A DNA stretch of 64,000 nucleotides from Basidiobolus meristosporus CBS 931.73 (taxonomy: Eukaryota > Fungi > Basidiobolomycota), in contig MCFE01000358.1 of the NCBI GenBank assembly GCA_002104905.1, positions 1 to 64,000 on the forward strand, given 5' to 3'. The position numbers and the translations under genes are program-made. Position 1 is the stretch's first letter. The number at the start of each line of letters is the position of its first letter. Under the pieces are notes generated by a model that did not search any database, was not told the origin of the DNA, and saw only the letters and a list, made by a program, of their open reading frames with translations. Positions 20,033-52,462 of this stretch are shown one piece after another.

Positions 20033-22566
<2,534 letters not shown>

Positions 22567-25476: not shown

Positions 25477-26787
25477 ATGAGAATCAACAGTCCTTTGGGA
25501 CAAGTACTCCTCGTGGGTTTCGTCTGCTTCGCATGCCCCGGTATGTTCAACGTCATCAACGGTATGGGCGCCGGTGGTCAGATGGACGATAACACAGCCA
25601 AGAACGGAAATGTCGCCCTTTACTCTTGCTTTGCCGTGTTCGGATGCCTAGGTGGCGGTTTCTACAACATTCTCGGTGGTCGTCTTTGCTTGTGCCTCGG
25701 TGGTTTGACTTACGCTTTGTACTCTGGCTCGCTCCTCTACTACAACGAGACCAAGAAGCCCGCATTCGTGATCATTGCCAGTGCCATCCTTGGTGTTGGT
25801 GCTGGTATTCTGTGGACAGCTCAAGGCGTGGTGATGATGTCGTACCCTGCGGAAGATCAGAAGGGCCGCTGTGTCGGTCTGTTCTGGATTCTGTTCAACC
25901 TGGGTGGTGTGATGGGAGCCTTCATTCCATTCGGCCTCAACTTCCACTCTGACAAGGGAGCAGTCAGCAACAGCACCTACCTCGCCTTCCTCGTGATCAT
26001 GATTCTCGGTGCTCTCCTCGGACTCATTCTCTTGCCCCCTGGCAAGGTGATCCGTGATGATGGCAGCAGAGTAGTCGTGAAGAAGTTCACCAACATCGGC
26101 GGCGAGATCGTGGACATCCTCAAGCTCTTCACCAACAAGTACATGCTCCTGCTCACCCCGTTGTTCATCAGCTCCAACTGGTTCTACTCCTACCAGTTCG
26201 GCGCTGTGAACGGAGTGTTGTTCAACCTTCGCACCCGTTCCCTCAACAACGCCCTGTACTGGGGATCCCAGATGCTTGGTGCCTATGGCTTGGGAGCCTT
26301 CCTCGACAACCCTCGCTTCGGTCGTCGTGCCAGAGCTGTGTATGGACTGGCGATTGTTGGAGCGATCTTCTCGGCCACCTGGGCCGGAGGACTTGCCCTT
26401 CAGCTCCAATACACTCGTGAGGATCACCCCTCGAACATCGACTTCATCGACCACCCCAGCGAGTTCTGGCCCAAGTTCATCCTGTACATCTTCTATGGCA
26501 TGTGTGATGCCATGTTGCAAACCTATGCCTACTGGGTCATGGGAGCCTTGTCGAACGACTCATCAGTGCTTGCTCGCTATGCTGGCTACTACAAGGGCAT
26601 CCAATCAGCCGGAGCCGCCATTGCGTGGAGAATCGATGCGGTCGGCACTGCCTTCCTCACCCAGCTGATCATCAACTGGGGACTGTTCACTCTGTCTCTT
26701 CCATTCACCTACTTTGTAGCACGTGAAGTCAAGGAGACCTGTAACGATGGCGCCGAGGAGAAGGGTGAGGTAGCTGACAAAGAGTAA
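25477..26787 (+). CDS. NGT1: Array copy 1: UNC-93-like (DUF895) MFS transporter, NGT1/NOPE1-like putative GlcNAc transporter, 436 aa, intact
   Basis: CPGMFN, ALYSCFA, LWTAQG..MSYP, SNWFYSYQF, FNLRTRSLN, YIFYG..DA, GYYKGIQSAGAAIAWR match recalled Candida Ngt1 motifs; about 12 TM segments. Confidence 0.85.
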   Translation: MRINSPLGQVLLVGFVCFACPGMFNVINGMGAGGQMDDNTAKNGNVALYSCFAVFGCLGGGFYNILGGRLCLCLGGLTYALYSGSLLYYNETKKPAFVIIASAILGVGAGILWTAQGVVMMSYPAEDQKGRCVGLFWILFNLGGVMGAFIPFGLNFHSDKGAVSNSTYLAFLVIMILGALLGLILLPPGKVIRDDGSRVVVKKFTNIGGEIVDILKLFTNKYMLLLTPLFISSNWFYSYQFGAVNGVLFNLRTRSLNNALYWGSQMLGAYGLGAFLDNPRFGRRARAVYGLAIVGAIFSATWAGGLALQLQYTREDHPSNIDFIDHPSEFWPKFILYIFYGMCDAMLQTYAYWVMGALSNDSSVLARYAGYYKGIQSAGAAIAWRIDAVGTAFLTQLIINWGLFTLSLPFTYFVAREVKETCNDGAEEKGEVADKE

Positions 26788-27537
26788 ACTTATACCCGAA
26801 CACTGTACAGATCCTATTTTGCAAATATCACTACCTAGCATTACCACATTACAAACAATACGAAATTTTAAAATAAATGATCTCATAACCATCACTTTCG
26901 TTACCAGAACATTAGCCTATTTGCTGATGGGCTTAATCAACTGATTTTACCCTGCGTTTTACTTGTAAATCTTCACCATCTGCATTACCGTATTTCTGCT
27001 GTGTCTATGCTTTGGTGGACATTGGTGGGTGCTCTAGAGCTAGAGGGGAATAGTAAGCTGCCTTGGATGAAAAGTCCGCATGAATATCGCCTCATTTGGA
27101 GGGTGCTACCGTTTTTGGGAGATCCCTAGGGATTGAAAATCGCTTCGGATCCACACATCAATATGTATATGTCTATAATAGAGATTGACAGGTCATGGGT
27201 GATCAACGTCGCGTTTCGATGGAGCATGATCCCCCAATCCTGGAAAACCCATTTCACGTCATACAGAAGTCCGTGGCGCCCAATTTGCTACATGTTCTGG
27301 CGAACAGAACCACTCTGTGACATAGAAATATGGTCAAATTGTGGTGTTTTTAAAGGGGCAAAATGCTGGTCAACAGTAATCTACTTGTTAAAGGTAAAAG
27401 TGGTCGGAGTTCTGGGCCTGCTCCAAATGGGGGAGATAAATCAAACTCAGTGGTGGGTGATGTATATAAAATCAACATAAAGTCGTGCATGATAGCCAAC
27501 CTTTACTACTACCAATACTACTAGTTACAACTATACA

Positions 27538-28849
27538 ATGAGAATCAACAGTCCTTTGGGACAAGTACTCCTCGTGGGTTTCGTCTGCTTCGCATGCCCC
27601 GGCATGTTCAACGTCATCAACGGTATGGGCGCCGGTGGTCAGATGGACGATAACACAGCCAAGAACGGAAATGTCGCCCTTTACTCTTGCTTTGCCGTGT
27701 TCGGATGCCTAGGTGGTGGTTTCTACAACATTCTCGGTGGTCGTCTTTGCTTGTGCCTCGGTGGTTTGACTTACGCTTTGTACTCTGGCTCGCTCCTCTA
27801 CTACAATGAGACCAAGAAGCCGCATTCGTGATCATTGCCAGTGCCATCCTTGGTGTTGGTGCTGGTATTCTGTGGACAGCTCAAGGCGTGGTGATGATGT
27901 CGTATCCTGCGGAAGATCAGAAGGGCCGCTGTGTCGGTCTGTTCTGGATTCTGTTCAACCTTGGGTGGTGTGATGGGAGCCTTCATTCCATTCGGCCTCA
28001 ACTTCCACTCTGACAAGGGAGCCGTCAGCAACAGCACCTACCTCGCCTTCCTCGTGATCATGATTCTCGGCGCTCTCCTCGGACTCATTCTCTTGCCCCC
28101 TGGCAAGGTGATCCGCGATGATGGCAGCAGAGTAGTCGTGAAGAAGTTCACCAACATCGGCGGCGAGATCGTGGACATCCTCAAGCTCTTCACCAACAAG
28201 TACATGCTCCTGCTCACCCCGTTGTTCATCAGCTCCAACTGGTTCTACTCCATACCAGTTCGGCGCCGTGAACGGAGTGTTGTTCAACCTTCGCACCCGT
28301 TCCCTCAACAACGCCCTGTACTGGGGATCTCAGATGCTTGGTGCCTATGGCTTGGGAGCCTTCCTTGACAACCCTCGCTTCGGTCGTCGTGCCAGAGCTG
28401 TGTATGGACTGGCCATTGTTGGAGCGATCTTCTCGGCCACCTGGGCCGGAGGTCTTGCCCTTCAGCTCCAATACACTCGTGAGGATCACCCCTCGAACAT
28501 CGACTTCATCGACCACCCCAGCGAGTTCTGGCCCAAGTTCATCCTGTACATCTTCTATGGCATGTGTGATGCCATGTTGCAAACCTATGCCTACTGGGTC
28601 ATGGGAGCCTTGTCGAACGACTCGTCAGTGCTTGCTCGCTACGCTGGCTACTACAAGGGCATCCAATCAGCCGGAGCCGCCATTGCCTGGAGAATCGATG
28701 CTGTTGGCACTGCCTTCCTCACCCAGCTGATCATCAATTGGGGACTGTTCACTCTGTCTCTTCCATTCACCTACTTCGTAGCACGCGAGGTCAAGGAGAC
28801 CTGTAACGATGGGGCTGAAGAGAAGGGTGAAGTTGCTGACAAGGAGTGA
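27538..28849 (+). CDS. NGT1: Array copy 2, three 1-nt indels (~27820, ~27961, ~28250)
   Basis: Full-length match to copy 1 once the indels are corrected. Confidence 0.75.
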
Positions 28850-29588
28850 ACAGGATATAAATTCATACTTGGTTTTATTTTTAGCCATATCTGTAATTAC
28901 TTTAATCGTACTTAACTAAATGTAATAAAGCTAGCGTGTTACATCGAACCTAATTTCAATTCCAGTACCAACGTACTAATTTCTAGCAGACAAAACGCTT
29001 TCGGTGTCCCGGCTGATTACAGTGATTAGTGGTAGCGTAATGCTGGAGATAACCTTCTATAACAGATTGTTTGGTCAACATCAATTTCTTCGAAATCATT
29101 GGTGTATATTGTCGGAGCATGGCAAATACCTTTCACTGGAATCTAGCCGTAAAAACCATTTCAACTCCGCACGCCACTGGTCACCAAAATAGAATTCATC
29201 AAATCCAACATTACACCAACTTCAATTTAGCTATTTCTAAAGCAGAACATAACTATGACGCTCGGCACATCCCGTAACCCATCAAATGATCTCTGGAAAC
29301 ACAACAGTGGCTTGTAGTCTGGTGACACGAGAGGGACGTTCCACCATGAAGCTTATTCCGGACAATCACTTCGGTTCACCAAATCAAATAAGTACAGATT
29401 TCAACATCGAAATTGGAATGGTCCAATTACCAAAATACCTTGGTTACTAAGACTGCTTATGTACCTAATACTACAGTAGCTTATGTGGATTAGCCACTCG
29501 GTGCATCGACGGTCGCTACCAAGTATATAAGACTGGGAGTAATGATATGTGATTATCAAATATTCACTCTCAATTGATAAACTAAATA

Positions 29589-30901
29589 ATGAGAATTAAC
29601 AGTCCTTTGGGACAAGTACTCCTCGTGGGTTTTGTCTGCTTCGCATGCCCCGGCATGTTCAACGTCATCAACGGTATGGGCGCCGGTGGTCAGATGGACG
29701 ATAACACAGCCAAGAACGGAAATGTCGCCCTTTACTCTTGCTTTGCCGTATTCGGATGCCTAGGTGGTGGTTTCTACAACATTCTCGGTGGTCGTCTTTG
29801 CTTGTGCCTCGGTGGTTTGACTTACGCTTTGTACTCTGGCTCGCTCCTCTACTACAACGAGACCAAGAAGCCGCATTCGTGATCATTGCCAGTGCCATCC
29901 TTGGTGTTGGTGCTGGTATTCTGTGGACAGCTCAGGGTGTGGTGATGATGTCGTATCCCGCGGAAGATCAGAAGGGTCGCTGTGTCGGTCTGTTCTGGAT
30001 TCTGTTCAACCTGGGTGGTGTGATGGGAGCCTTCATTCCATTCGGCCTCAACTTCCACTCTGACAAGGGAGCCGTCAGCAACAGCACCTACCTCGCCTTC
30101 CTCGTGATCATGATTCTCGGCGCTCTCCTCGGACTCATTCTCCTTGCCCCCTGGCAAGGTGATCCGCGATGATGGCAGCAGAGTAGTCGTGAAGAAGTTC
30201 ACCAACATCGGTGGTGAGATCGTGGACATCCTCAAGCTCTTCACCAACAAGTACATGCTCCTGCTCACCCCGTTGTTCATTCAGCTCCAACTGGTTCTAC
30301 TCCTACCAGTTCGGCGCCGTGAACGGAGTGTTGTTCAACCTTCGCACCCGTTCCCTCAACAACGCCCTGTACTGGGGATCTCAGATGCTTGGTGCCTATG
30401 GCTTGGGAGCCTTCCTTGACAACCCTCGCTTCGGTCGTCGTGCCAGAGCTGTGTATGGACTGGCCATTGTTGGAGCGATCTTCTCGGCCACCTGGGCCGG
30501 AGGTCTTGCCCTTCAGCTCCAATACACTCGTGAGGATCACCCCTCGAACATCGACTTCATCGACCACCCCAGTGAGTTCTGGCCCAAGTTCATCCTGTAC
30601 ATCTTCTATGGCATGTGTGATGCCATGTTGCAGACCTATGCCTACTGGGTCATGGGAGCCTTGTCGAACGACTCATCAGTGCTTGCTCGCTATGCTGGCT
30701 ACTACAAGGGTATCCAATCAGCCGGAGCCGCCATTGCGTGGAGAATCGATGCTGTCGGCACTGCCTTCCTCACCCAGCTGATCATCAACTGGGGACTGTT
30801 CACTCTGTCTCTTCCATTCACCTACTTCGTAGCAGCGTGAGGTCAAGGAGACCTGTAACGATGGCGCTGAAGAGAAGGGTGAAGCAGCTGACAAGGAGTA
30901 A
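29589..30901 (+). CDS. NGT1: Array copy 3, four 1-nt indels (~29871, ~30143, ~30281, ~30833)
   Basis: Full-length match once the indels are corrected. Confidence 0.75.
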
Positions 30902-32376
30902 ATCCAAAATATATCGTTGTACAGAATTTCGTCTACATCTAACTCCATCCATTAAATTTAAAGCATGATTTAATCAACATATAATACGCAATGAATAAAC
31001 CACGTATCAATCATTTCAGTATTACGAATCCATGAGCTCACAATTCTGTAGTACAAAGTGGATATACCGAACCCTTAATTTTGAGCGGGGGTCAAATTCG
31101 GGCCATTTCTCACGTAAGATACATGTCTGATTTTACATTTCCCGAATCACTCTAGGTTGACCAGAATAATAAATGGTAAACAAAAATCGCCTAATCTTTC
31201 CTTTTGTAGCCATTCTCGCTTCGGAGTAAGTTTGTATTGATCATCCCAAAATTATAATATTGTATTTTAATGAAACTATATTGATGCCTAAAGTCCGTAG
31301 AATCCTCGGTCCAGTGTTATTATTAGTATTGAGACCTATGTTACACGGTGGCCCATAGCTTCCATATTTGCAGATCTTTTCGTCAAATAGAATACCAACT
31401 AGCATGAATTAATATGTTTAAATCATTAAATACTAAAACGGGTAAAATACCTAGTTATGAGTAAAATCCCTGCGGTGCGAATGTGGTTGAACTTGTTTCT
31501 TACAATTGGTTATCCAGGACTGCGTGCTTCATTCGACAATTCTCCGTCTACTGTATGTGGCTTTGAAATCAGCTCAATTTCCTAGGTAATTGGCGTCCTC
31601 AATAATGTCCTCCGTACAGGGCATAAAGTTGATTGGACGGTGTGGTTTGTATTGAAACTATTCATTTCAAATAACGATCAAATATGTAGCTAAAAGTTGT
31701 GATAATCAGAGTAGAAAGCCTGCAATTCGATCCTAAAATGAATGAGGTTCAATTCTGTTATTATTATGAACCCCATAAATCGCTGCGCGTTGTATAGTAT
31801 TGGACGAATGATCACAGAGTGTTGATTGGCTACGCGTAACGATCCTTCGCAATCCAGATTCGATATTTGCGAAATGAAATTGAGTTTCAGGATTTTCGGG
31901 TCTTACCCGAAAATGGAATGGGCTTCCATATCACTTGGTCCACACTGCTTTCCCTGATTAGGAAGCCTATACTAAATATGGCAATAATTTATGCTACAAA
32001 GATTGGAATTGAATAAGCGCGTAAACGAATGATTTTTGGACGGCTGGGCCAAGATGGACTTCAAGAAATATTTGCATGATGGAATCATCGAAAAAAGTGC
32101 AGGTCACACGATAATTTGAGGCGCACACATGAAAATCCGCTCGGGCGAATAGAGCATTGGGAACGGATGGGAATGTGTTCATATTGAAACAAATTAAAGT
32201 TGTAAAAGGTGTTAGTCTTAAAGGGTATATTCAATGAAGATGTAAATGGAGTTCTGGACCAATGCCAAGAACGATATTCACTTTAAACTCGGTGAATGAA
32301 TGTGTATATAAGATTAGCATCGAGGTTTCTGTTTCATCAAACACTAAATAATACTACAACTAGTTACAACTGTACA

Positions 32377-33687
32377 ATGAGAATCAACAGTCCTTTGGGA
32401 CAAGTACTCCTCGTGGGTTTTGTCTGCTTCGCATGCCCCGGCATGTTCAACGTCATCAACGGTATGGGCGCCGGTGGTCAGATGGATGATAACACAGCCA
32501 AGAACGGAAATGTCGCCCTTTACTCTTGCTTTGCCGTGTTCGGATGCCTAGGTGGCGGTTTCTACAACATTCTCGGTGGTCGTCTTTGCTTGTGCCTCGG
32601 TGGTTTGACTTACGCTTTGTACTCTGGCTCGCTCCTCTACTACAACGAGACCAAGAAGCCCGCATTCGTGATCATTGCCAGTGCCATCCTTGGTGTTGGT
32701 GCTGGTATTCTGTGGACAGCTCAGGGTGTGGTGATGATGTCGTATCCCGCGGAAGATCAGAAGGGTCGCTGTGTCGGTCTGTTCTGGATTCTGTTCAACC
32801 TGGGTGGTGTGATGGGAGCCTTCATTCCATTCGGCCTCAACTTCCACTCTGACAAGGGAGCCGTCAGCAACAGCACCTACCTCGCCTTCCTCGTGATCAT
32901 GATTCTCGGCGCTCTCCTCGGACTCATTCTCTTGCCCCCTGGCAAGGTGATCCGCGATGATGGCAGCAGAGTAGTCGTGAAGAAGTTCACCAACATCGGC
33001 GGTGAGATCGTGGACATCCTCAAGCTCTTCACCAACAAGTACATGCTCCTGCTCACCCCGTTGTTCATTAGCTCCAACTGGTTCTACTCCTACCAGTTTG
33101 GCGCCGTGAACGGAGTGTTGTTCAACCTTCGCACCCGTTCCCTCAACAACGCCCTTTACTGGGGATCTCAGATGCTTGGTGCCTACGGCTTGGGAGCCTT
33201 CCTCGACAACCCCCGCTTCGGTCGTCGTGCCAGAGCTGTGTATGGACTGGCGATTGTTGGAGCGATCTTCTCGGCCACCTGGGCCGGAGGTCTTGCCCTT
33301 CAGCTCCAATACACTCGTGAGGATCACCCCTCGAACATCGACTTCATCGACCACCCCAGCGAGTTCTGGCCCAAGTTCATCCTGTACATCTTCTATGGCA
33401 TGTGTGATGCCATGTTGCAAACCTATGCCTACTGGGTCATGGGAGCCTTGTCGAACGACTCATCAGTGCTTGCTCGCTATGCTGGCTACTACAAGGGCAT
33501 CCAATCAGCCGGAGCCGCCATTGCCTGGAGAATCGATGCTGTTGGCACTGCCTTCCTCACCCAGCTGATCATCAACTGGGGACTGTTCACTCTGTCTCTT
33601 CCATTCACCTACTTCGTAGCGCGTGAGGTCAAGGAGACCTGTAACGATGGCGCTGAAGAGAAGGGTGAGGTAGCAGACAAAGAGTAA
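32377..33687 (+). CDS. NGT1: Array copy 4, intact (protein identical to copy 1)
   Basis: 436-aa ORF from MRINSP; the upstream ATG at 32296 precedes the TATA box (32305). Confidence 0.85.
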   Translation: MRINSPLGQVLLVGFVCFACPGMFNVINGMGAGGQMDDNTAKNGNVALYSCFAVFGCLGGGFYNILGGRLCLCLGGLTYALYSGSLLYYNETKKPAFVIIASAILGVGAGILWTAQGVVMMSYPAEDQKGRCVGLFWILFNLGGVMGAFIPFGLNFHSDKGAVSNSTYLAFLVIMILGALLGLILLPPGKVIRDDGSRVVVKKFTNIGGEIVDILKLFTNKYMLLLTPLFISSNWFYSYQFGAVNGVLFNLRTRSLNNALYWGSQMLGAYGLGAFLDNPRFGRRARAVYGLAIVGAIFSATWAGGLALQLQYTREDHPSNIDFIDHPSEFWPKFILYIFYGMCDAMLQTYAYWVMGALSNDSSVLARYAGYYKGIQSAGAAIAWRIDAVGTAFLTQLIINWGLFTLSLPFTYFVAREVKETCNDGAEEKGEVADKE

Positions 33688-34444: not shown

Positions 34445-35755
34445 ATGAGAATCAACAGTCCTTTGGGACAAGTACTCCTCGTGGGTTTTGTCTGCTTCGC
34501 ATGCCCCGGCATGTTCAACGTCATCAACGGTATGGGCGCCGGTGGACAGATGGACGATAACACAGCCAAGAACGGAAATGTCGCCCTTTACTCTTGCTTT
34601 GCCGTGTTCGGATGCCTAGGTGGTGGTTTCTACAACATTCTTGGTGGTCGTCTTTGCTTGTGCCTCGGTGGTTTGACTTACGCTTTGTACTCTGGCTCGC
34701 TCCTCTACTACAACGAGACCAAGAAGCCGCATTCGTGATCATTGCCAGTGCCATCCTTGGTGTTGGTGCTGGTATTCTGTGGACAGCTCAGGGTGTGGTG
34801 ATGATGTCGTATCCCGCGGAAGATCAGAAGGGTCGCTGTGTCGGTCTGTTCTGGATTCTGTTCAACCTGGGTGGTGTGATGGGAGCCTTCATTCCATTCG
34901 GCCTCAACTTCCACTCTGACAAGGGAGCCGTCAGCAACAGCACCTACCTCGCCTTCCTCGTGATCATGATTCTCGGTGCTCTCCTCGGACTCATTCTCCT
35001 GCCTCCTGGCAAGGTGATCCGTGATGATGGCAGCAGAGTAGTCGTGAAGAAGTTCACCAACATCGGCGGTGAGATCGTGGACATCCTCAAGCTCTTCACC
35101 AACAAGTACATGCTCCTGCTCACCCCATTGTTCATCAGCTCCAACTGGTTCTACTCATACCAGTTCGGCGCTGTGAACGGAGTGTTGTTCAACCTTCGCA
35201 CCCGTTCCCTCAACAACGCCCTCTACTGGGGATCTCAGATGCTTGGTGCCTACGGCTTGGGAGCCTTCCTCGACAACCCTCGCTTCGGTCGTCGTGCCAG
35301 AGCTGTGTATGGACTGGCCATTGTTGGAGCGATCTTCTCGGCCACCTGGGCCGGAGGACTTGCCCTTCAGCTCCAATACACTCGTGAGGATCACCCCTCG
35401 AACATCGACTTCATCGACCACCCCAGCGAGTTCTGGCCCAAGTTCATCCTGTACATCTTCTATGGCATGTGTGATGCCATGTTGCAGACCTATGCTTACT
35501 GGGTCATGGGAGCCTTGTCGAACGACTCGTCAGTGCTTGCTCGCTATGCTGGCTACTACAAGGGCATCCAATCAGCCGGAGCTGCCATTGCGTGGAGAAT
35601 CGATGCGGTCGGCACTGCCTTCCTTACCCAGCTGATCATCAACTGGGGGACTGTTCACTCTGTCTCTTCCATTCACCTACTTTGTAGCGCGCGAGGTCAA
35701 GGAGACCTGCAACGATGGCGCCGAAGAGAAGGGCGAGGTAGCAGACAAAGAGTAA
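34445..35755 (+). CDS. NGT1: Array copy 5, two 1-nt indels (~34728, ~35648)
   Basis: Full-length match once the indels are corrected. Confidence 0.75.
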
Positions 35756-37039: not shown

Positions 37040-37524
37040 CGAAACAGAAACTGAAGGCAAACACTAACATTGAAATGGTCATCTAATCATTCCTAATTTG
37101 GGGTTGCCTGTGCCATTCTTGGAGCTGAGATTGGATACTATTCCAATTAGAGCGTAGCATATATCTTAATGTAGAGATCAATACCAACCAATCGTGATCC
37201 CAAGGACCATGAGTATTTGGTTAATGGAATACTCATGGAAAAGCTAGCTCAGATCTCCGTGCAATTAGTGGCGTCGGTGATTCGGTGCTTTCTAGGACAT
37301 TGAACATGCTCATGCAATTTAGCTTTGTGGTGGTAAAAAACCCAGCTTGACAGTAATCTAATCATTATGGGACCAGGCGGAGTTCTGGACTATTTCTGAA
37401 TTCAGTAATCGCCTCAAACTCCATAGTTCCGCAAGTATAAAGATCTGCAGTGAGGTAATCATAAGGCACAACCCTTAATACCACTCTTACTCTTACTCTT
37501 ACTACAACTAGTTACAACTTTACA
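37040..37524 (+). promoter_or_regulatory. Shared ~460-480 bp promoter block of copies 6-9 (also ~39683-40141, ~42685-43137, ~45170-45652)
   Basis: Clearly alignable in four spacers; contains an 11-bp inverted repeat, GGAGTTCTGG and a TATA box. Confidence 0.85.
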
Positions 37525-38835
37525 ATGAGAATCAACAGTCCTCTGGGACAAGTACTCCTGGTGGGTTTTGTCTGCTTCGCATGTCCCGGCATGTTCAACG
37601 TCATCAACGGTATGGGTGCCGGTGGTCAGATGGATGATAACACAGCCAAGAACGGAAATGTCGCCCTTTACTCTTGCTTTGCCGTGTTCGGATGCCTAGG
37701 TGGTGGTTTCTACAACATTCTTGGTGGTCGTCTTTGCTTGTGCCTCGGTGGTTTGACTTACGCTTTGTACTCTGGCTCGCTCCTCTACTACAACGAGACC
37801 AAGAAGCCCGCATTCGTGATCATTGCCAGTGCCATCCTTGGTGTTGGTGCTGGTATTCTGTGGACAGCTCAGGGTGTGGTGATGATGTCGTATCCCGCGG
37901 AAGATCAGAAGGGTCGCTGTGTCGGTCTGTTCTGGATTCTGTTCAACCTGGGTGGTGTGATGGGAGCCTTCATTCCATTCGGCCTCAACTTCCACTCTGA
38001 CAAGGGAGCCGTCAGCAACAGCACCTACCTCGCCTTCCTCGTGATCATGATTCTCGGTGCTCTCCTCGGACTCATTCTCTTGCCCCCTGGCAAGGTGATC
38101 CGCGATGATGGCAGCAGAGTAGTCGTGAAGAAGTTCACCAACATCGGCGGCGAGATCGTGGACATCCTCAAGCTCTTCACCAACAAGTACATGCTCCTGC
38201 TCACCCCATTGTTCATCAGCTCCAACTGGTTCTACTCCTACCAGTTCGGCGCCGTGAACGGAGTGTTGTTCAACCTTCGCACCCGTTCCCTCAACAACGC
38301 CCTCTACTGGGGATCTCAGATGCTTGGTGCCTACGGCTTGGGTGCCTTCCTCGACAACCCTCGCTTCGGTCGTCGCGCCAGAGCTGTGTATGGACTGGCG
38401 ATTGTTGGAGCGATCTTCTCGGCCACCTGGGCCGGAGGACTTGCCCTTCAGCTCCAATACACTCGTGAGGATCACCCCTCGAACATCGACTTCATCGACC
38501 ACCCCAGCGAGTTCTGGCCCAAGTTCATCCTGTACATCTTCTATGGCATGTGTGATGCCATGTTGCAAACCTATGCCTACTGGGTCATGGGAGCCTTGTC
38601 GAACGACTCGTCAGTGCTTGCTCGCTATGCTGGCTACTACAAGGGCATCCAATCAGCCGGAGCTGCCATTGCCTGGAGAATCGATGCTGTTGGCACTGCC
38701 TTCCTTACCCAGCTGATCATCAACTGGGGACTGTTCACTCTGTCTCTTCCATTCACCTACTTTGTAGCGCGCGAGGTCAAGGAGACCTGTAACGATGGCT
38801 CCGAGGAGAAGGGCGAGGTAGCTGACAAAGAGTAG
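37525..38835 (+). CDS. NGT1: Array copy 6, intact (one A>S near the C-terminus)
   Basis: 436-aa ORF. Confidence 0.85.
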   Translation: MRINSPLGQVLLVGFVCFACPGMFNVINGMGAGGQMDDNTAKNGNVALYSCFAVFGCLGGGFYNILGGRLCLCLGGLTYALYSGSLLYYNETKKPAFVIIASAILGVGAGILWTAQGVVMMSYPAEDQKGRCVGLFWILFNLGGVMGAFIPFGLNFHSDKGAVSNSTYLAFLVIMILGALLGLILLPPGKVIRDDGSRVVVKKFTNIGGEIVDILKLFTNKYMLLLTPLFISSNWFYSYQFGAVNGVLFNLRTRSLNNALYWGSQMLGAYGLGAFLDNPRFGRRARAVYGLAIVGAIFSATWAGGLALQLQYTREDHPSNIDFIDHPSEFWPKFILYIFYGMCDAMLQTYAYWVMGALSNDSSVLARYAGYYKGIQSAGAAIAWRIDAVGTAFLTQLIINWGLFTLSLPFTYFVAREVKETCNDGSEEKGEVADKE

Positions 38836-40141
38836 ATGGAATGCATGACATTGTACAGGATTTAATCAAGTTTATACTCGAAACATCGCTATTATAAGAG
38901 CATCTTTAAAATTCAATATGATAATAAATCAAGATATATTAGTCATATCCTTTATTCCAGGTCGTTCCCGAGTTTTCAATTACCTACAACATCTCAGTAA
39001 TCCGCTCCAACTCCTCACTTTTTGCTGACAGAAATCTTATATTCATCTATGTAGTTCTTTTAAATATATCATTCCTCCACTTTAATGCGAATATTGGTTT
39101 CAGTATTACTCATTTCTTTGCTGGACGGAATCTACTTTAATCGATTGACTTAGTAGGCGTATGACATCTGTTAACAACGTATGGTTTTCGCACGCATAGG
39201 CTCGTAGCGCTTGCTGTACCGTTAGCTCTGGTGCACAAATAACTATCTAAGGAATGAAATAGTCGATATGCTGATCGTTCGTGTAGCACAGTTGTCAGCG
39301 ATGTCAAATTACCCACTCATCCTGGTGTGCCGTTCGGTGGGATATATTGAAATATGACCAACTAATGTAATCGAAATGACAGAAGGCTTGCTCTAACTCC
39401 GAAAAATGACCAAAGATGCAATAGTCAATGGAAACGGAGTATGCGTTGGCCGAACGATGTTCCATAGCAAATCGACCTACTGTATTTTTTTACACTACTA
39501 TATTCAATCATCGATATCGCGGTGCTACCTGTACAATTTGAGTAAAGCAGCTGCTTACACGATTGTATTATCTATTCCACATGGACTTACGAAAAGAGAA
39601 ATCGGTCAGTTCCCATTTCATATCTGTTACGGTGGTGATGCATTGAATGTATGGTATATTTACATACAGCAAATGTAACCATCAAAACAGAAACTGAAGG
39701 CAAACATTAACACTGAAATGGTCATCTAATCATTCCTAATTTGGAGCTGAGATTGGATACTATTCCAATTAGAGCGTAGCATATATCTTAATGTAGAGAT
39801 CAATACCAACCAATCATGATCACAAGGACCATGAGTATTTGGTTAATGGAATACTCATGGAAAAGCTTGCTCAGATCTCTGTGCAATTAGTGGCGTCGGT
39901 GATTCGGTGCTTTCTAGGACATTGAACATGCTCATGCAATTTAGCTTTATGGTGGTAAAAAATCCAGCTTGACAGTAATCTAATCATTATGGGACCAGGC
40001 GGAGTTCTGGACTAGTTCTGAATTCAGTAATCGCCTCAAACTCCGTAGCTCCACAAGTATATAAGATCTGCAGTGAGGTAATCATAAGGCACAACCCTTA
40101 ATACTACTCTTACTCTTACTACAACTAGTTACAACTTTACA

Positions 40142-41453
40142 ATGAGAATCAACAGTCCTCTGGGACAAGTACTCCTGGTGGGTTTTGTCTGCTTCGCATG
40201 TCCCGGCATGTTCAACGTCATCAACGGTATGGGCGCCGGTGGTCAGATGGATGATAACACAGCCAAGAACGGAAATGTCGCCCTTTACTCTTGCTTTGCC
40301 GTGTTCGGATGCCTAGGTGGCGGTTTCTACAACATTCTCGGTGGTCGTCTTTGCTTGTGCCTCGGTGGTTTGACTTACGCTTTGTACTCTGGCTCGCTCC
40401 TCTACTACAACGAGACCAAGAAGCCGGCATTCGTGATCATTGCCAGTGCCATCCTTGGTGTTGGTGCTGGTATTCTGTGGACAGCTCAGGGTGTGGTGAT
40501 GATGTCGTATCCCGCGGAAGATCAGAAGGGTCGCTGTGTCGGTCTGTTCTGGATTCTGTTCAACCTGGGTGGTGTGATGGGAGCCTTCATTCCATTCGGC
40601 CTCAACTTCCACTCTGACAAGGGCGCCGTCAGCAACAGCACCTACCTCGCCTTCCTCGTGATCATGATTCTCGGTGCTCTCCTCGGACTCATTCTCTTGC
40701 CCCCTGGCAAGGTGATCCGCGATGATGGCAGCAGAGTAGTCGTGAAGAAGTTCACCAACATCGGTGGTGAGATCGTGGACATCCTCAAGCTCTTCACCAA
40801 CAAGTACATGCTCCTGCTCACCCCATTGTTCATCAGCTCCAACTGGTTCTACTCCTATCCAGTTCGGTGCCGTGAACGGAGTGTTGTTCAACCTTCGCAC
40901 CCGTTCCCTCAACAACGCCCTCTACTGGGGATCTCAGATGCTTGGTGCCTATGGCTTGGGAGCCTTCCTCGACAACCCTCGCTTCGGTCGTCGTGCCAGA
41001 GCTGTGTATGGACTGGCGATTGTTGGAGCGATCTTCTCGGCCACCTGGGCCGGAGGACTTGCCCTTCAGCTCCAATACACTCGTGAGGATCACCCCTCGA
41101 ACATCGACTTCATCGACCACCCCAGCGAGTTCTGGCCTAAGTTCATCCTGTACATCTTCTATGGCATGTGTGATGCCATGTTGCAAACCTATGCCTACTG
41201 GGTCATGGGAGCCTTGTCGAACGACTCATCAGTGCTTGCTCGCTACGCTGGCTACTACAAGGGCATTCAATCAGCCGGAGCTGCCATTGCGTGGAGAATC
41301 GATGCTGTCGGCACTGCCTTCCTCACCCAGCTGATCATCAATTGGGGACTGTTCACTCTGTCTCTTCCATTCACCTACTTCGTAGCACGCGAGGTCAAGG
41401 AGACCTGTAACGATGGCGCTGAAGAGAAGGGCGAGGTAGCTGACAAAGAGTAG
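40142..41453 (+). CDS. NGT1: Array copy 7, one 1-nt insertion (~40858)
   Basis: Full-length match once the indel is corrected. Confidence 0.8.
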
Positions 41454-42280: not shown

Positions 42281-43137
42281 AATCAATTTCCTTATTACCG
42301 ACTTTCTCACCCTGCTGACCATCAGCTGAGGACGCTTTACCCTATCACTTCTGAACATCTATTTCGTAGCATGAGAGATCTCGGAAATCTGTAATTAGTC
42401 TACCAACGGGTACAGGATGGGTATTAACAGTACAGAAGCCGAGACCTAACCAATATACCCCATTTATTGCACTTCCATCATCTATTATCGCTATCTCAAT
42501 GAGAATAAACACAACCATGATTTACTCCACATAGACTTACGAAATAGTGTAATAGTCTGTTAATAATTCGGATCCGCCTTGGTAAAATTTTCTCGAACGT
42601 GGAGTATGTTCCATAAACATAAAGTGCTAAATCGTAAAGAATTTCATGAGATCGAAATAGAATTCAAGGGCAAGCAATAGCATCAGAATGGTCATCCAAT
42701 CATTCCTAATTTGGGATTCCCAGTGCCCTTGATGAAACTTGAATTGAACACGGTTCCAATTAGATCGTAGCATATATCCTAACGAAGAGATCAATACCAA
42801 CCATTTATGATCCCAAGGACCATGAGTATTTGGTTAATGGAATACTCATGGAAAAGCCTGCTCAGATCTCTGTGCAATTAGTGGCGTCGGTGATCTGGTG
42901 CTTTCTAGGACATTGAACATGCTCATGCAATTTAGCTTTGTGATGGTAAAAAACCCAGCATGACAGCAATCTAATCATTATGGGACCAGGCGGAGTTCTG
43001 GACTATTTCTGAATTCAGTAATCGCCTCAAACTCCATAGTTCCGCAAGTATATAAAGATCTGCAGTGAGGTAATCATAAGGCACAACCCTTAATACTACT
43101 CTTACTTACTCTTACTACAACTAGTTACAACTTTACA

Positions 43138-44448
43138 ATGAGAATCAACAGTCCTCTGGGACAAGTACTCCTGGTGGGTTTTGTCTGCTTCGCATGCCCC
43201 GGCATGTTCAACGTCATCAACGGTATGGGCGCCGGTGGTCAGATGGATGATAACACAGCCAAGAACGGAAATGTCGCCCTTTACTCTTGCTTTGCCGTAT
43301 TCGGATGCCTAGGTGGTGGTTTCTACAACATTCTCGGTGGTCGTCTTTGCTTGTGCCTCGGTGGTTTGACTTACGCTTTGTACTCTGGCTCGCTCCTCTA
43401 CTACAACGAGACCAAGAAGCCCGCATTCGTGATCATTGCCAGTGCCATCCTTGGTGTTGGTGCCGGTATTCTGTGGACAGCTCAGGGTGTGGTGATGATG
43501 TCGTATCCCGCGGAAGATCAGAAGGGTCGCTGTGTCGGTCTGTTCTGGATTCTGTTCAACCTGGGTGGTGTGATGGGAGCCTTCATTCCATTCGGCCTCA
43601 ACTTCCACTCTGACAAGGGAGCCGTCAGCAACAGCACCTACCTCGCCTTCCTCGTGATCATGATTCTCGGTGCTCTCCTCGGACTCATTCTCTTGCCCCC
43701 TGGCAAGGTGATCCGTGATGATGGCAGCAGAGTAGTCGTGAAGAAGTTCACCAACATCGGCGGTGAGATCGTGGACATCCTCAAGCTCTTCACCAACAAG
43801 TACATGCTCCTGCTCACCCCGTTGTTCATCAGCTCCAACTGGTTCTACTCCTACCAGTTCGGCGCCGTGAACGGAGTGTTGTTCAACCTTCGCACCCGTT
43901 CCCTCAACAACGCCTTGTACTGGGGATCTCAGATGCTTGGTGCCTACGGCTTGGGAGCCTTCCTTGATAACCCTCGCTTCGGTCGTCGCGCCAGAGCTGT
44001 GTATGGACTGGCGATTGTTGGAGCAATTTTCTCTGCCACCTGGGCCGGAGGACTTGCCCTTCAGCTCCAATACACTCGTGAGGATCACCCCTCGAACATC
44101 GACTTCATCGACCACCCCAGCGAGTTCTGGCCCAAGTTCATCCTGTACATCTTCTATGGCATGTGTGATGCCATGTTGCAAACCTATGCCTACTGGGTCA
44201 TGGGAGCCTTGTCGAACGACTCGTCAGTGCTTGCTCGCTATGCTGGCTACTACAAGGGCATCCAATCAGCCGGAGCCGCCATTGCCTGGAGAATCGATGC
44301 TGTCGGCACTGCCTTCCTTACCCAGCTGATCATCAACTGGGGACTGTTCACTCTGTCCCTTCCATTCACCTACTTCGTAGCGCGCGAGGTCAAGGAGACC
44401 TGTAACGATGGCGCTGAAGAGAAGGGTGAGGCAGCTGACAAAGAGTAA
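43138..44448 (+). CDS. NGT1: Array copy 8, intact (V>A near the C-terminus)
   Basis: 436-aa ORF. Confidence 0.85.
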   Translation: MRINSPLGQVLLVGFVCFACPGMFNVINGMGAGGQMDDNTAKNGNVALYSCFAVFGCLGGGFYNILGGRLCLCLGGLTYALYSGSLLYYNETKKPAFVIIASAILGVGAGILWTAQGVVMMSYPAEDQKGRCVGLFWILFNLGGVMGAFIPFGLNFHSDKGAVSNSTYLAFLVIMILGALLGLILLPPGKVIRDDGSRVVVKKFTNIGGEIVDILKLFTNKYMLLLTPLFISSNWFYSYQFGAVNGVLFNLRTRSLNNALYWGSQMLGAYGLGAFLDNPRFGRRARAVYGLAIVGAIFSATWAGGLALQLQYTREDHPSNIDFIDHPSEFWPKFILYIFYGMCDAMLQTYAYWVMGALSNDSSVLARYAGYYKGIQSAGAAIAWRIDAVGTAFLTQLIINWGLFTLSLPFTYFVAREVKETCNDGAEEKGEAADKE

Positions 44449-45652
44449 TTCCAAAGCATTACATTGTACAGAATTAATCAAGACTTCAATTGCAACATCA
44501 TCTCAAGAGCACTTTCGAGAGAGACATATTAATAAATGAAAACCTATCAATAGTTCCTCTCGCACCTCTCTGTGCGAAATACTTTCATTCAAAACGCTTT
44601 GTAGCTTGTAATAGATAATTTTTTTTGGAATATACTTACTAAATTTTGGTGGATAGGCTTACATGAGTGAAAATTGGGTGTATAGTGGGCAAATTCCGTA
44701 CTTGGCACTACTTAAAATCACTGTAGTGTCGATTTAAAACCGGTAATTCCTGGGTGGTAAGACTCCCTGAACCTTATTCTGGCTAGCGAGAGGGCTTGGG
44801 GAATCTATACTGTTGATAACTCTTTCTTAACCTTATCCCCAGTAAAAGACTCTGTACCCTACCTCTTTGAACTAATTACTGTGAGGTTCTCCCAAACCTA
44901 AGGAGAACGGAGTGTCTGTTAAAAGTTATAAAGTCCAGACTGGTACGATATAGTGCAACTGTTACATAACTATCACCAGTGAACAATGCGTTAGTGTTAT
45001 TTAACTAGTTGAATAAAGACTAGCGCTTACTTAACCTTTGCATTTTCTCCGCACAGACTTGCTTAAAGGGGTGACAATCAGTTCATGTTTCAATTCTGAT
45101 GTATACGAGATTTACTTGTATATGGTGTATATTCCCATACAACACACAGCATTGAAATACATGGGAGCGAAGCAGAACCGGATCGAAAACACTAATATTG
45201 AAACGGCCATCTAATCATTCCTGATATAGTGTTGCCTGTGCCCTTCTTGGAACTGGGATTGAATACTGTTCCAATTAGATCGTAGCATATATCTTAATGT
45301 AGAGATCAATACCAACCAATCATGATCACAAGGACCATGAGTATTTGGTTAATGGAATACTCATGGAAAAGCTAGCTCAGATCTCTGTGCAATTAGTGGC
45401 GTCGGTGATTCGGTGCTTTCTAGGACATTGAACATGCTCATGCAATTTAGCTTTGTGATGGTAAAAAATCCAGCTTGACAGTAATCTAGTCATTATGGGA
45501 CCAGGCGGAGTTCTGGACTAGTTCTGAATTCAGTAATCGCCTCAAACTCCGTAGCTCCACAAGTATATAAGATCTGCAGTGAGGTAATCATAAGGCACAA
45601 CCCTTAATACTACACTACTCTTACTCTTACTACAACTAGTTACAACTTTACA

Positions 45653-46963
45653 ATGAGAATCAACAGTCCTTTGGGACAAGTACTCCTGGTGGGTTTTGTC
45701 TGCTTCGCATGTCCCGGCATGTTCAACGTCATCAACGGTATGGGCGCCGGTGGTCAGATGGACGATAACACAGCCAAGAACGGAAATGTCGCCCTTTACT
45801 CTTGCTTTGCCGTGTTCGGATGCCTAGGTGGTGGTTTCTACAACATTCTCGGTGGTCGTCTTTGCTTGTGCCTCGGTGGTCTGACTTACGCTTTGTACTC
45901 TGGCTCGCTCCTCTACTACAACGAGACCAAGAAGCCCGCATTCGTGATCATTGCCAGTGCCATCCTTGGTGTTGGTGCTGGTATTCTGTGGACAGCTCAG
46001 GGTGTGGTGATGATGTCGTATCCTGCGGAAGATCAGAAGGGTCGCTGTGTCGGTCTGTTCTGGATTCTGTTCAACCTGGGTGGTGTGATGGGAGCCTTCA
46101 TTCCATTCGGCCTCAACTTCCACTCTGACAAGGGAGCCGTCAGCAACAGCACCTACCTCGCCTTCCTCGTGATCATGATTCTCGGCGCTCTCCTCGGACT
46201 CATTCTCTTGCCCCCTGGCAAGGTGATCCGTGATGATGGCAGCAGAGTAGTCGTGAAGAAGTTCACCAACATCGGCGGCGAGATCGTGGACATCCTCAAG
46301 CTCTTCACCAACAAGTACATGCTCCTGCTCACCCCGTTGTTCATCAGTTCCAACTGGTTCTACTCCTACCAGTTCGGCGCCGTGAACGGAGTGTTGTTCA
46401 ACCTTCGCACCCGTTCCCTCAACAACGCCCTTTACTGGGGATCTCAGATGCTTGGTGCCTACGGCTTAGGAGCCTTCCTTGATAACCCTCGCTTCGGTCG
46501 TCGCGCCAGAGCTGTGTATGGACTGGCCATTGTTGGAGCGATCTTCTCAGCCACCTGGGCCGGAGGTCTTGCCCTTCAGCTCCAATACACTCGTGAGGAT
46601 CACCCCTCGAACATCGACTTCATCGACCACCCCAGCGAGTTCTGGCCCAAGTTCATCCTGTACATCTTCTATGGCATGTGTGATGCCATGTTGCAAACCT
46701 ATGCCTACTGGGTCATGGGAGCCTTGTCGAACGACTCATCAGTGCTTGCTCGCTACGCTGGCTACTACAAGGGCATCCAATCAGCCGGAGCCGCCATTGC
46801 CTGGAGAATCGATGCTGTCGGCACTGCCTTCCTCACCCAGCTGATCATCAACTGGGGACTGTTCACTCTGTCTCTTCCATTCACCTACTTTGTAGCGCGC
46901 GAGGTCAAGGAGACCTGTAACGATGGCGCTGAAGAGAAGGGTGAGGTAACAGACAAAGAGTAA
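45653..46963 (+). CDS. NGT1: Array copy 9, intact (A>T near the C-terminus)
   Basis: 436-aa ORF. Confidence 0.85.
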   Translation: MRINSPLGQVLLVGFVCFACPGMFNVINGMGAGGQMDDNTAKNGNVALYSCFAVFGCLGGGFYNILGGRLCLCLGGLTYALYSGSLLYYNETKKPAFVIIASAILGVGAGILWTAQGVVMMSYPAEDQKGRCVGLFWILFNLGGVMGAFIPFGLNFHSDKGAVSNSTYLAFLVIMILGALLGLILLPPGKVIRDDGSRVVVKKFTNIGGEIVDILKLFTNKYMLLLTPLFISSNWFYSYQFGAVNGVLFNLRTRSLNNALYWGSQMLGAYGLGAFLDNPRFGRRARAVYGLAIVGAIFSATWAGGLALQLQYTREDHPSNIDFIDHPSEFWPKFILYIFYGMCDAMLQTYAYWVMGALSNDSSVLARYAGYYKGIQSAGAAIAWRIDAVGTAFLTQLIINWGLFTLSLPFTYFVAREVKETCNDGAEEKGEVTDKE

Positions 46964-48051
46964 GTCCAAACCGACGGTCAATATTTCTATCAGCTACTTC
47001 ACTACCATCCCTCATAATAGTATTAACAATAAAATTAATTCATTCTAATCATACCATATATTTACTCGCTTTATTGATTTGAAAAATATGATCTTCATCC
47101 TGTTTTTCGTGAGGCGTTTTCCATGTATATTTCGGAGTTCCCCCATGCTTTGCAAATATTCATTTGCCTGTGATTCGTTCACCAAATGTGATGGGTGCCT
47201 TTAATGCTACTAATATACACCGTTTTTCTCGGCGATTACTCATCAAAAACCACAATATAGGAGCATTTATTCTGGCTGAGTTACGTGTTTAGGTACCGGA
47301 GTCCAAAGGAAGTACTATACTTGTATCTCGTCATATCAAATTTACACATTTGCACTATTGAGTACCACAAAGTAACATATAGATGCTGATCAATTGGGGG
47401 ACGGGTAAAGTACTGCTTATGGCTGATGGGCACCAATACTACATAGTGGATTCAGCTGGGACGACCCTTCAGCCACCAACATTTCTTATAGCCCATTTCC
47501 CATACCCCGAAGGCCAAAAGCACAAGAATGGTCTGGTCTGTGGGGACGGTTTGTTCGTAATCAACAACAAGGTTTTCACTTACCAAAATTGTCAACGGAC
47601 CTAGATGGCAGCATATTGTGGAGATTGGCCTGGTCACCAATTTATCAAGTCGTACTCTCCGCAAACTGCCTGCCGAAATGGGAAGGTATACAATGACTAA
47701 TGAGAATCTTACGAGTTTTCTCACTCTCCAATCTGTGTAGATATAGTGACCTATCTCCGGATTCGGATGGACCAATGGGTAGCATTCCAATATTTACTCA
47801 AACAATAAAGTTAGAGTTCTCTAGTGTAACAGTCGAATTCCATCTCCATTTTAGTATAAATTACTCGCTGGTTTGGCAATTTCGGTAACCTTAAAGCCTC
47901 CCGTAGCGCAACTGGGTATAGTAAGCAATGGTAGCACAAGTGCTTATATGAAGTCGGTTGTATAGTAACTACAAGCTCGGGGTGTGGGTGTATATAAAGC
48001 CTTCAACCTGCTGGGTATAATCATAAGTAATTTGCTACTTTCTACTCTACA

Positions 48052-49362
48052 ATGAGAATCAACAGTCCTTTGGGACAAGTACTCCTGGTGGGTTTTGTCT
48101 GCTTCGCATGCCCCGGCATGTTCAACGTCATCAACGGTATGGGTGCCGGTGGTCAAATGGACGATAACACAGCCAAGAACGGAAATGTCGCCCTTTATTC
48201 TTGCTTTGCCGTGTTCGGATGCCTAGGTGGTGGTTTCTACAACATTCTCGGTGGTCGTCTTTGCTTGTGCCTCGGTGGTTTGACTTACGCTTTGTACTCT
48301 GGCTCGCTCCTCTACTACAACGAGACCAAGAAGCCGGCATTCGTGATCATTGCCAGTGCCATCCTTGGTGTTGGTGCCGGTATTCTGTGGACAGCCCAGG
48401 GTGTGGTGATGATGTCGTATCCCGCGGAAGATCAGAAGGGTCGCTGTGTCGGTCTGTTCTGGATTCTGTTCAACCTGGGTGGTGTGATGGGAGCCTTCAT
48501 TCCATTCGGCCTCAACTTCCACTCTGACAAGGGAGCCGTCAGCAACAGCACCTACCTCGCCTTCCTCGTGATCATGATTCTCGGCGCTCTCCTCGGACTC
48601 ATTCTCTTGCCTCCTGGCAAGGTGATCCGCGACGATGGCAGCAGAGTAGTCGTGAAGAAGTTCACCAACATCGGTGGTGAGATCGTGGACATCCTCAAGC
48701 TCTTCACCAACAAGTACATGCTCCTGCTCACCCCGTTGTTCATCAGCTCCAACTGGTTCTACTCCTACCAGTTCGGCGCCGTGAACGGAGTGTTGTTCAA
48801 CCTTCGCACCCGTTCCCTCAACAACGCCCTGTACTGGGGATCTCAGATGCTTGGTGCCTACGGCTTGGGAGCCTTCCTCGACAACCCTCGCTTCGGTCGT
48901 CGTGCCAGAGCTGTGTATGGACTGGCGATTGTTGGAGTGATCTTCTCAGCCACCTGGGCCGGAGGACTTGCCCTTCAGCTCCAATACACTCGTGAGGATC
49001 ACCCCTCGAACATCGACTTCATCGACCACCCCAGCGAGTTCTGGCCCAAGTTCATCCTGTACATCTTCTATGGCATGTGTGATGCCATGTTGCAAACCTA
49101 TGCCTACTGGGTCATGGGAGCCTTGTCGAACGACTCATCAGTGCTTGCTCGCTACGCTGGCTACTACAAGGGCATCCAATCAGCCGGAGCTGCCATTGCC
49201 TGGAGAATCGATGCTGTCGGCACTGCCTTCCTCACCCAGCTGATCATCAACTGGGGACTGTTCACTCTGTCTCTTCCATTCACCTACTTCGTAGCACGTG
49301 AGGTCAAGGAGACCTGTAACGATGGCGCTGAAGAGAAGGGCGAGGTGGCTGACAAGGAGTAA
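48052..49362 (+). CDS. NGT1: Array copy 10, intact (A>V in IVGVIFS)
   Basis: 436-aa ORF. Confidence 0.85.
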   Translation: MRINSPLGQVLLVGFVCFACPGMFNVINGMGAGGQMDDNTAKNGNVALYSCFAVFGCLGGGFYNILGGRLCLCLGGLTYALYSGSLLYYNETKKPAFVIIASAILGVGAGILWTAQGVVMMSYPAEDQKGRCVGLFWILFNLGGVMGAFIPFGLNFHSDKGAVSNSTYLAFLVIMILGALLGLILLPPGKVIRDDGSRVVVKKFTNIGGEIVDILKLFTNKYMLLLTPLFISSNWFYSYQFGAVNGVLFNLRTRSLNNALYWGSQMLGAYGLGAFLDNPRFGRRARAVYGLAIVGVIFSATWAGGLALQLQYTREDHPSNIDFIDHPSEFWPKFILYIFYGMCDAMLQTYAYWVMGALSNDSSVLARYAGYYKGIQSAGAAIAWRIDAVGTAFLTQLIINWGLFTLSLPFTYFVAREVKETCNDGAEEKGEVADKE

Positions 49363-52127: not shown

Positions 52128-52462
52128 AATATGTGTAGAGCAATCAATTTCCCAGGTAGAGAATCAGTATCTCTGCTGCAAAGAAGGAACTCTAGTAGCT
52201 CAATGTCACAGTCAAGAACTGAGTCATCCCACAATATGACAGCAGAGGAACACTGTAAATTCTTTGAAGCACAACAACAGTGCCCAAAGATAAAGCCCCC
52301 AGAGCAACCTATTGCAGCATGGAAGAGAGAGACTGTCATCTTTATACTGAAGCCTAAAAGTCAAATGTCACTGAAGATTGGTGAAGTCATTGAGTGTTAT
52401 AATGAAGAGTAGGCTAGTTCTCAGGAGGACATAAGAAGACTAACATGCCATCACCTGAAGGC

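Follow-up and report, generated by a model that had tools for sequence, protein, structure and literature searches.

Ten full-length copies of one gene, predicted to encode an UNC93-like MFS transporter, lie in tandem in the genome of the fungus Basidiobolus meristosporus CBS 931.73, and the coding parts of these ten copies are about 97% alike while most of the sequence around them has diverged. The array was analysed in a stretch of 64,000 nucleotides (positions 1-64000 of the 87,646-nt contig MCFE01000358.1, hereafter the window) that forms part of a PacBio-only assembly (PMC7466969), and the results on the array refer to this one genome. The interpretation preferred here, which is given a probability of roughly 72%, is that of an old array of whole-unit tandem duplicates, the coding sequences (CDSs) of which have repeatedly been overwritten among the copies by ectopic (interlocus) gene conversion.

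A BLAST search of one unit against the window recovered the ten copies, designated c1 to c10 and all located on the forward strand, as well as a relic, c0. The open reading frames (ORFs) of c1-c10 comprise 436 residues and are intronless. Intact genes are represented by c1 (25477-26787), the protein of which is identical to that of c4 (32377-33687), by c6 (37525-38835), which possesses one private Ala-to-Ser replacement and a TAG stop codon, and by c8 (43138-44448), c9 (45653-46963) and c10 (48052-49362), the last member of the array; the frames of c2, c3, c5 and c7 are interrupted by one-base insertions and deletions (indels) which are considered further below. The array protein matches the Pfam families UNC-93 (PF05978; 63.5 bits, cut-off 22.9) and MFS_1 (PF07690; 39.9 bits, cut-off 33.4). 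Among its homologues, other UNC93-like MFS genes from Basidiobolus are closest (62-82% identity), and genes from further early-diverging fungi and UNC93-like proteins from plants come next (45-58% identity), several of the homologues at 50-58% bearing the name UNC93-like. These matches identify the array gene as a putative UNC93-like MFS transporter.

The contrast between coding and flanking sequence is central to this interpretation. Alignment of the ten CDSs revealed 89 variable sites among 1311, 85 of them synonymous, with a mean pairwise synonymous divergence (dS) of 0.10 (0.07-0.14), a nonsynonymous divergence (dN) of 0.001 and a ratio of the two (omega) of 0.01. The original prediction, made from the letters of the window alone, had described copies that differ only by single-nucleotide polymorphisms (SNPs), mostly synonymous ones, which is correct for the substitutions but overlooks the 1-bp indels in c2, c3, c5 and c7. 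At the stop codon, a column identity of 0.95-1.0 gives way to about 0.4-0.6 over a few nucleotides, and the corresponding 5' drop for c1-c5 and c10 is located 0-30 nt upstream of the ATG. The 300-bp upstream and downstream flanks are 51-62% identical, as compared to 51.3 +/- 1.5% for shuffled sequences, the exception being the promoters of c6-c9 (93-96%), and because the flanks have diverged to this degree a recent duplication of whole units is excluded. Identity had been predicted to end at the stop codon and within about 25 nt upstream of the ATG, a description that fits c1-c5 and c10 but not c6-c9, which share approximately 400 bp of upstream sequence. Furthermore, copies that lie further apart in the array differ more in their CDSs (Mantel r 0.38, p 0.014), and the CDS differences show no coupling to the identity of the flanks (Mantel r -0.16, p 0.21).

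Close resemblance at synonymous sites could in principle also be displayed by old copies that were never homogenised, if codon-usage or RNA-level selection kept their synonymous sites fixed. A high GC content at third codon positions (GC3; 0.69 in the array versus 0.57-0.60 in same-genome paralogues), the dominance of C-ending codons and the very low omega are in line with such constraint. However, third positions that are invariant within the array differ in 48-51% of the identical-residue codons of paralogues (one from the same genome and a relative from B. ranarum), to which the array shows a dS of 1.7-2.2, indicating that constraint does not explain the likeness of the copies. Neither does saturation, since transitions make up 72 of the 89 variable sites and only three sites are triallelic, so that the sites are far from saturated, which likewise speaks against constraint, as does the escape from homogenisation displayed by the 5' segment of c0. 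Taken together, this explanation can be given practically no credence. The higher GC3 of the array is expected from GC-biased conversion, although high expression could also produce it; polarising the variants with c11 and c12, two further family members beyond the window, as a test of GC-biased conversion gave a weak and non-significant trend, a comparison that is unreliable at a dS of 0.59.

The flanks themselves retain traces of a common origin. The spacers s1_2 and s4_5 align from end to end at 58% identity (E 1e-27), the last ~230 bp before several copies align at 58-62%, and identity between the proximal promoters of c6-c9 and those of c2, c4 and c5 amounts to 56-62%, as compared to the shuffled value of 51.3 +/- 1.5%; the view that most spacers cannot be aligned was therefore too strong. 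A TATA(T/A)A box is situated 61-89 nt before the ATG of every copy from c1 to c10 (at -67 in c1), the signal AATAAA is present 50-103 nt after the stop codon in all ten, and the motif TGTAYAG is found exactly 17 nt past the stop codon in seven of the ten copies (26804, 30918, 33704, 35772, 38852, 41470 and 44465). Apart from these three elements, the TATA box, TGTAYAG at +17 and AATAAA, nothing has been kept in the diverged spacers. TGTAYAG, with its UGUA core, may represent a candidate site for a Puf-type RNA-binding protein. The common layout and the weak spacer homology indicate that promoter, ORF and 3' untranslated region (UTR) were duplicated together and that the flanks diverged later, in agreement with the old duplications that had been proposed: the layout of whole units has been kept while sequence identity in the flanks has been lost. 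With each copy possessing its own TATA promoter, it is plausible that one protein is placed under several regulatory inputs.

The four copies c6-c9 are instructive with respect to where homogenisation ends. Their upstream sequences are about 95% identical over approximately 400 bp, corresponding to positions 37125-37524 for c6, 39742-40141 for c7, 42738-43137 for c8 and 45253-45652 for c9 (forward strand), beyond which identity falls sharply to about 58%. Divergence at non-CpG sites is 0.024 for third positions and 0.039 for the proximal promoter but reaches 0.37 for the distal promoter, with a step at -400. In their CDSs, c6-c9 resemble one another no more than they resemble the other six copies, and the step at -400 marks the edge of a homogenised block and not the date of a duplication. 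Variable sites within these promoters, mostly non-CpG, occur in blocks which back different splits of the four copies, five sites at -401 to -373 and five at -184 to -94 (runs test p 0.016 overall, with p values of 0.016-0.05).

Within the CDSs, the variants form a patchwork that no single tree accommodates. Among the 48 informative sites there are 42 different splits, compared to the seven that a ten-taxon tree allows; 58% of site pairs fail the four-gamete test, the Hudson-Kaplan minimum number of recombination events (Rm) is 30, and the maximum-likelihood (ML) tree of the CDSs is star-like with no node above 63% support. Although the promoters of c6-c9 form a clade, no coding site supports such a grouping. 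The prediction that neither one tree nor the promoter grouping would fit the SNPs is thus confirmed, and each of the five short SNP words by which it had been illustrated is found in exactly the copies named.

Part of this patchwork has a mutational origin. Pairwise divergence at third positions that are capable of forming CpG is 0.22, versus 0.03 at the remaining ones, and transitions per site per copy reach 0.092 at CpG versus 0.014 at CpH (C followed by a base other than G), a 6.4-fold difference. CpG supplies about half of the variable sites. The two classes of site possess distinct frequency spectra, with counts of 11/10/8/14/2 at CpG sites, where singletons are too few, and 27/10/5/1/1 at non-CpG sites, where singletons are in excess. 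The pooled spectrum (38/20/13/15/3 versus a neutral-coalescent expectation of 35/20/15/13/6; Tajima's D -0.13) had seemed to fit a neutral coalescent, a fit that is accidental because it sums two opposite deviations. The 16 informative sites outside CpG are also in conflict, with 42% of pairs incompatible and an Rm of 7. The fraction of pairs failing the four-gamete test at distances of at most 30 bp is 0.375, as opposed to 0.58 by permutation (p 0.00025), and this effect persists within CpG classes (p 0.003), so that the linkage which survives control for CpG is of short range only, no more than 30 bp. The patchwork as such had been put forward as a signature of conversion; this holds for the short-range linkage and for the non-CpG conflict, but most of the intermediate-frequency variants are recurrent CpG sites.

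It has to be considered, in this regard, whether a single recent burst or homogenisation, followed by independent mutation without exchange, could have generated the same pattern, in which case the patchwork would reflect parallel CpG-to-TpG/CpA changes. The strong CpG contrasts in third-position divergence and in transition rate are compatible with such a history, as are the singleton excess at non-CpG sites, the essentially negative outcome of the test for long tracts (see below) and an ML fit that favours 91% invariable sites plus a fast class. Simulations in which the third positions were divided into two classes, 121 of them hot and 315 cold, and kept at their true locations argue otherwise. 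A burst without exchange yields 93 +/- 4% singletons at cold sites (59% observed) and 44-59% at hot sites (20% observed), with or without rate heterogeneity among the hot sites, while producing just 26-35 informative sites (48 observed) and no effect of distance. Linkage within 30 bp that is significant inside CpG classes and the mutual conflict of the 16 non-CpG informative sites also speak against it, and this history would still require a CDS-limited homogenisation event, which is itself conversion; accordingly, it is regarded as unlikely. Steady conversion among ten copies with a mean tract of about 30 bp, on the other hand, matches the count of informative sites, the diversity of splits and the four-gamete fractions at both short and long distances, whereas the fit is poor at a mean tract of 100 bp and fails at 300 bp or more. 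A back-of-envelope estimate of ~300-bp tracts is contradicted by these simulations.

Several observations nevertheless weigh against repeated conversion as the preferred explanation. Variants present in at least three copies fall at CpG sites in about 24 of 31 cases, and recurrent CpG mutation accounts for a large part of the site conflict, though not for all of it. The steady-state model does not reproduce every aspect of the data, because non-CpG singletons (59-61%) are too many, variable non-CpG sites number 39 versus about 25 predicted and CpG singletons are fewer than predicted, and a simple model of equal-rate conversion is therefore incomplete. A mean tract of ~30 bp is short for ectopic conversion, and this estimate should be read as 'short' and not as a measurement. 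A GENECONV-style test returned a single borderline fragment, shared by c2 and c3, which are identical over 356 bp at CDS positions 628-983 (global p 0.05), and its pairwise version gave p<0.05 for three of 45 pairs where 2.25 are expected. No orthologous array was found in another species, the array being monophyletic and the clusters of B. ranarum non-syntenic with the window. Finally, the assembly is PacBio-only and has clear indel problems within the array.

The manner in which conversion could maintain the observed boundaries can be outlined as follows. Exchange needs homology, and once the flanks had diverged tracts would be able to start and end only inside the conserved block, which comprises the ORF throughout the ten copies and, for c6-c9, also ~400 bp of promoter, so that the boundary would reinforce itself. 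Purifying selection would purge nonsynonymous variants (omega ~0.01), with the consequence that the ten copies encode practically one protein. Effective tracts would be short, about 30 bp and below 100 bp under the simple equal-rate model, and neighbouring copies would exchange somewhat more often than distant ones. CpG mutation, approximately six times faster and recurrent, would overlay conversion and supply most of the intermediate-frequency patchwork. We infer that the exchange is DNA-to-DNA conversion and that it is still going on. The suggestion of ongoing conversion limited to the ORF can be retained insofar as homogenisation is restricted to the homologous block, essentially the ORF, and a model without exchange is rejected by simulation; it needs to be amended for c6-c9, where the block includes the promoter.

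A route through reverse-transcribed mRNA (complementary DNA, cDNA) recombining with the genomic copies had also been proposed, on account of the lack of introns. The homogenised block is intronless and roughly equals the transcribed coding part, and decayed copia-type elements with reverse-transcriptase remnants are located beside the array. However, all relatives examined, among them paralogues at a dS from 0.6 to above 2, are likewise single ORFs without introns, including c11 and c12 (dS 0.59), two genes in locus L001 and one in locus L003 of B. meristosporus and four genes of B. ranarum (dS >1.7), which indicates that intronlessness predates the array and lends no support to a cDNA intermediate. 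Moreover, the 3' UTR, the best represented part of a cDNA, is not homogenised, the ~400 bp shared by c6-c9 extends upstream of the TATA box and thus outside any mRNA, and no poly(A) tract follows the copies. The cDNA route is accordingly considered highly improbable, and the proposal is not upheld.

The relic c0 (24060-24890, forward strand), which lies just left of the range covered by the original prediction and was absent from its list of copies, serves as an internal reference for decay. It has lost 504 bp through an internal deletion, is frameshifted twice (+2 and +1) and has an altered C-terminus, it is without a TATA box, and it differs from the consensus by 19 nonsynonymous and 20 synonymous changes. 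Its 5' 162 bp are about 12% diverged, as opposed to about 4% for its 3' 627 bp, which carry 12 of the array polymorphisms, and this unevenness indicates that c0 is a mosaic of an old segment and a recently homogenised one. A special relationship between c0 and c5 was considered and rejected, c0 being equidistant from all copies.

The remaining four copies are all broken by one-base indels, amounting to eight events in ten instances. In c2 (27538-28849, with a TGA stop codon) a 1-bp deletion at 27819/27820 and insertions at 27961 and 28252 break the frame, in c3 (29589-30901) a deletion at 29870/29871 and insertions at 30142, 30280 and 30834, in c5 (34445-35755) a deletion at 34726/34727 and an insertion at 35645, and in c7 (40142-41453) a single inserted T at 40858; all four are on the forward strand, and one deletion is common to c2, c3 and c5. 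Neutral decay generates far more substitutions than indels, and the residual errors of PacBio assemblies are typically 1-bp indels. None of the 16 private substitutions in these four copies is nonsynonymous, in comparison with eight of 11 in the 3' part of c0 (Fisher p 7e-5), and because this is so despite ten indel instances the frameshifts are probably consensus errors. It is thus considered likely that all ten 1-bp indels are errors of this kind and that the array consists of ten intact genes, the deletion common to c2, c3 and c5 being the sole feature that would suit a genuine lesion which conversion has spread. In the public annotation, the models of c2, c3, c5 and c7 (322, 380, 436 and 413 aa, respectively) bridge the indels with short invented introns, such as a 47-nt 'intron' spanning the first break in c5, are truncated, or run past the true stop codon, and all four would be incorrect if the indels represent consensus errors.

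These same indels raise the question of whether the fine mosaic is real, as polishing of PacBio reads in a 97%-identical repeat might have mis-assigned true variants among the copies. The reliance on PacBio data alone, the ten one-base indel instances that resemble consensus errors by the above comparison of private substitutions, and the near-independence of sites, which random mis-assignment would produce, are all consistent with an artefact. On the other hand, 95% of the variants are synonymous and most are transitions, as expected of real biological variants, and the spacers are unique and of a length that allows multi-kb reads to anchor the individual copies. Short-range linkage, isolation by distance and the promoter blocks of c6-c9 would be unexpected under random mis-assignment, and the CDS-flank contrast is independent of phasing, making an assembly artefact improbable as the source of the mosaic. 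Independent contigs encoding the array protein were sought and none was found in the collections searched: the exact-sequence cluster consists of this contig alone, and a search with residues 60-200 returned no short fragments of read assemblies.

Coding-limited identity is not confined to the window, as it is shown by three other clusters of the family. The first consists of c11 and c12, which are located at contig positions 70621-71922 and 74121-75422 (L005:6501-7802 and L005:10001-11302), beyond the retrotransposon nest that follows the array and outside the window. Both encode 433 aa, their proteins are identical, and with seven synonymous differences they are 99.5% identical to each other, being alike only from -294 to +73. 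As compared to the main array they are 86% identical (dS 0.59) and have no flank sequence in common, which suggests that two pools of exchange are separated either by the ~19-kb decayed nest or by the 14% divergence itself. Genes for ribosomal protein S11, a pterin-4a protein and S8e follow c11 and c12. The second cluster is an inverted pair of B. meristosporus (L001:4428-5654 versus L001:10043-11269) with 99.2% identity over 1227 bp strictly within the CDS; identity starts 42 nt inside one ORF and stops 36 nt before its stop codon, and the flanks are dissimilar. The third is a tandem pair of B. ranarum (L004:2324-3589 versus L004:5363-6628) that shows 98% identity over 1266 bp, in the CDS only, with a 70%-identical relic (L004:4419-4788) between the two genes. 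With respect to synteny between the species, the ORFs of the three-gene cluster L004 have no match in the window outside the array.

On its left side the array is bordered by genes at 8611-12315, 14699-16978 and ~20000-22566, including a tricalbin-like gene (SMP plus six C2 domains) and a Cep120-like ORF (DUF3668), and a PAK-type kinase gene (PBD plus Pkinase) ends just before c0. To the right, a nest of decayed copia-type retrotransposons (50000-64000) starts about 0.6 kb past c10 and contains remnants of Retrotran_gag_2 and RVT_2; it harbours a near-perfect hairpin at 51386-52135, the 355-nt arms of which show 92% complementarity and are separated by 40 nt. The observed/expected (o/e) ratio of CpG is 0.00-0.09 in every 1-kb window of the nest, and the CpG-poor domain runs on to about contig position 69000 (o/e 0.00-0.12, 0-4 CpG per kb, many 70-95% repeats), in comparison with 0.6-1.0 everywhere left of the nest.

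The vicinity of a CpG-stripped nest is reminiscent of fungal processes that direct cytosine mutation or methylation at repeats, such as repeat-induced point mutation (RIP) and methylation induced premeiotically (MIP). The array resembles their products in that transitions occur in one dinucleotide context in repeats, next to a nest deprived of CpG; it differs in that it is without missense or nonsense load (omega 0.01) and in that a single-copy paralogue and B. ranarum genes are equally CpG-depleted. At silent sites, C is much rarer in front of G than in front of other bases throughout the family in both species (odds ratios 0.21-0.53), which means that CpG decay affects these genes in general and not transposons alone. 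The single-copy paralogue L003 and the genes of B. ranarum match the array in the strength of this deficit, and nothing thus links the CpG effect to repetition; a CpG decay specific to the array was therefore rejected, the deficit being general across the family. The GC3 of family members is 0.57-0.69 in B. meristosporus versus 0.43-0.46 in B. ranarum. It is a speculative and rather doubtful possibility that the CDS repeats are targeted by CpG-directed repeat mutation (nest CpG o/e ~0.03) while short-tract conversion and selection repair the hits, in which case the SNP patchwork would be that of a family surviving a RIP-like process.

The array constitutes an unusually clean natural system, as it combines ten copies with sharp boundaries, an omega of 0.01, nested domains of probable conversion, a relic pseudogene as internal control and three more clusters of the same family. 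For an early-diverging fungus, it offers a means of measuring how long the tracts of ectopic conversion are, how exchange depends on distance and how strong its GC bias is. It also demonstrates that SNP mosaics in multigene families can stem largely from CpG hot spots, and conversion tests should consequently stratify sites by context. In functional terms, the array would imply that one UNC93-like transporter is under strong selection, either for its dosage or for expression that is regulated differently among the copies.

Gene conversion confined to coding sequence is already known, and the array is a further clear example, found in B. meristosporus. Coding regions of tandem copies are homogenised by ectopic conversion in the amylase genes of Drosophila and in globin duplicates of primates. 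In two further reports, ectopic conversion is likewise described as homogenising tandem coding regions, in the beta-tubulin arrays of Leishmania (PMC1533823) and in the HMA4 triplication of Arabidopsis halleri (PMC3749932). All four of these systems differ from the present array in organism and gene family. Among yeast paralogues of low synonymous divergence (low KS), homology in the flanks extends over no more than 0-10 bp for 80-86% of pairs (Katju et al. 2009, PMC2728529), which resembles the low synonymous divergence without flank homology that is seen here; however, those paralogues are mostly dispersed pairs that are highly expressed, so that codon bias is a serious alternative, whereas the present family forms a ten-member tandem array for which constraint is excluded. 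A system that is alike in its arrangement is that of the mammalian KRTAP1 genes, a tandem family whose coding regions undergo concerted evolution while the flanks radiate normally, and for which purifying selection, codon adaptation and reverse transcription were excluded by the authors in favour of short-tract conversion plus selection (Zhou et al., bioRxiv 10.1101/282418). In comparison with KRTAP1, the present array is fungal, comprises ten copies of a transporter of the 12-transmembrane type and is known from one genome rather than from a phylogeny of orthologous arrays, while it adds a promoter block homogenised among four copies and a strong overlay of CpG hypermutation.

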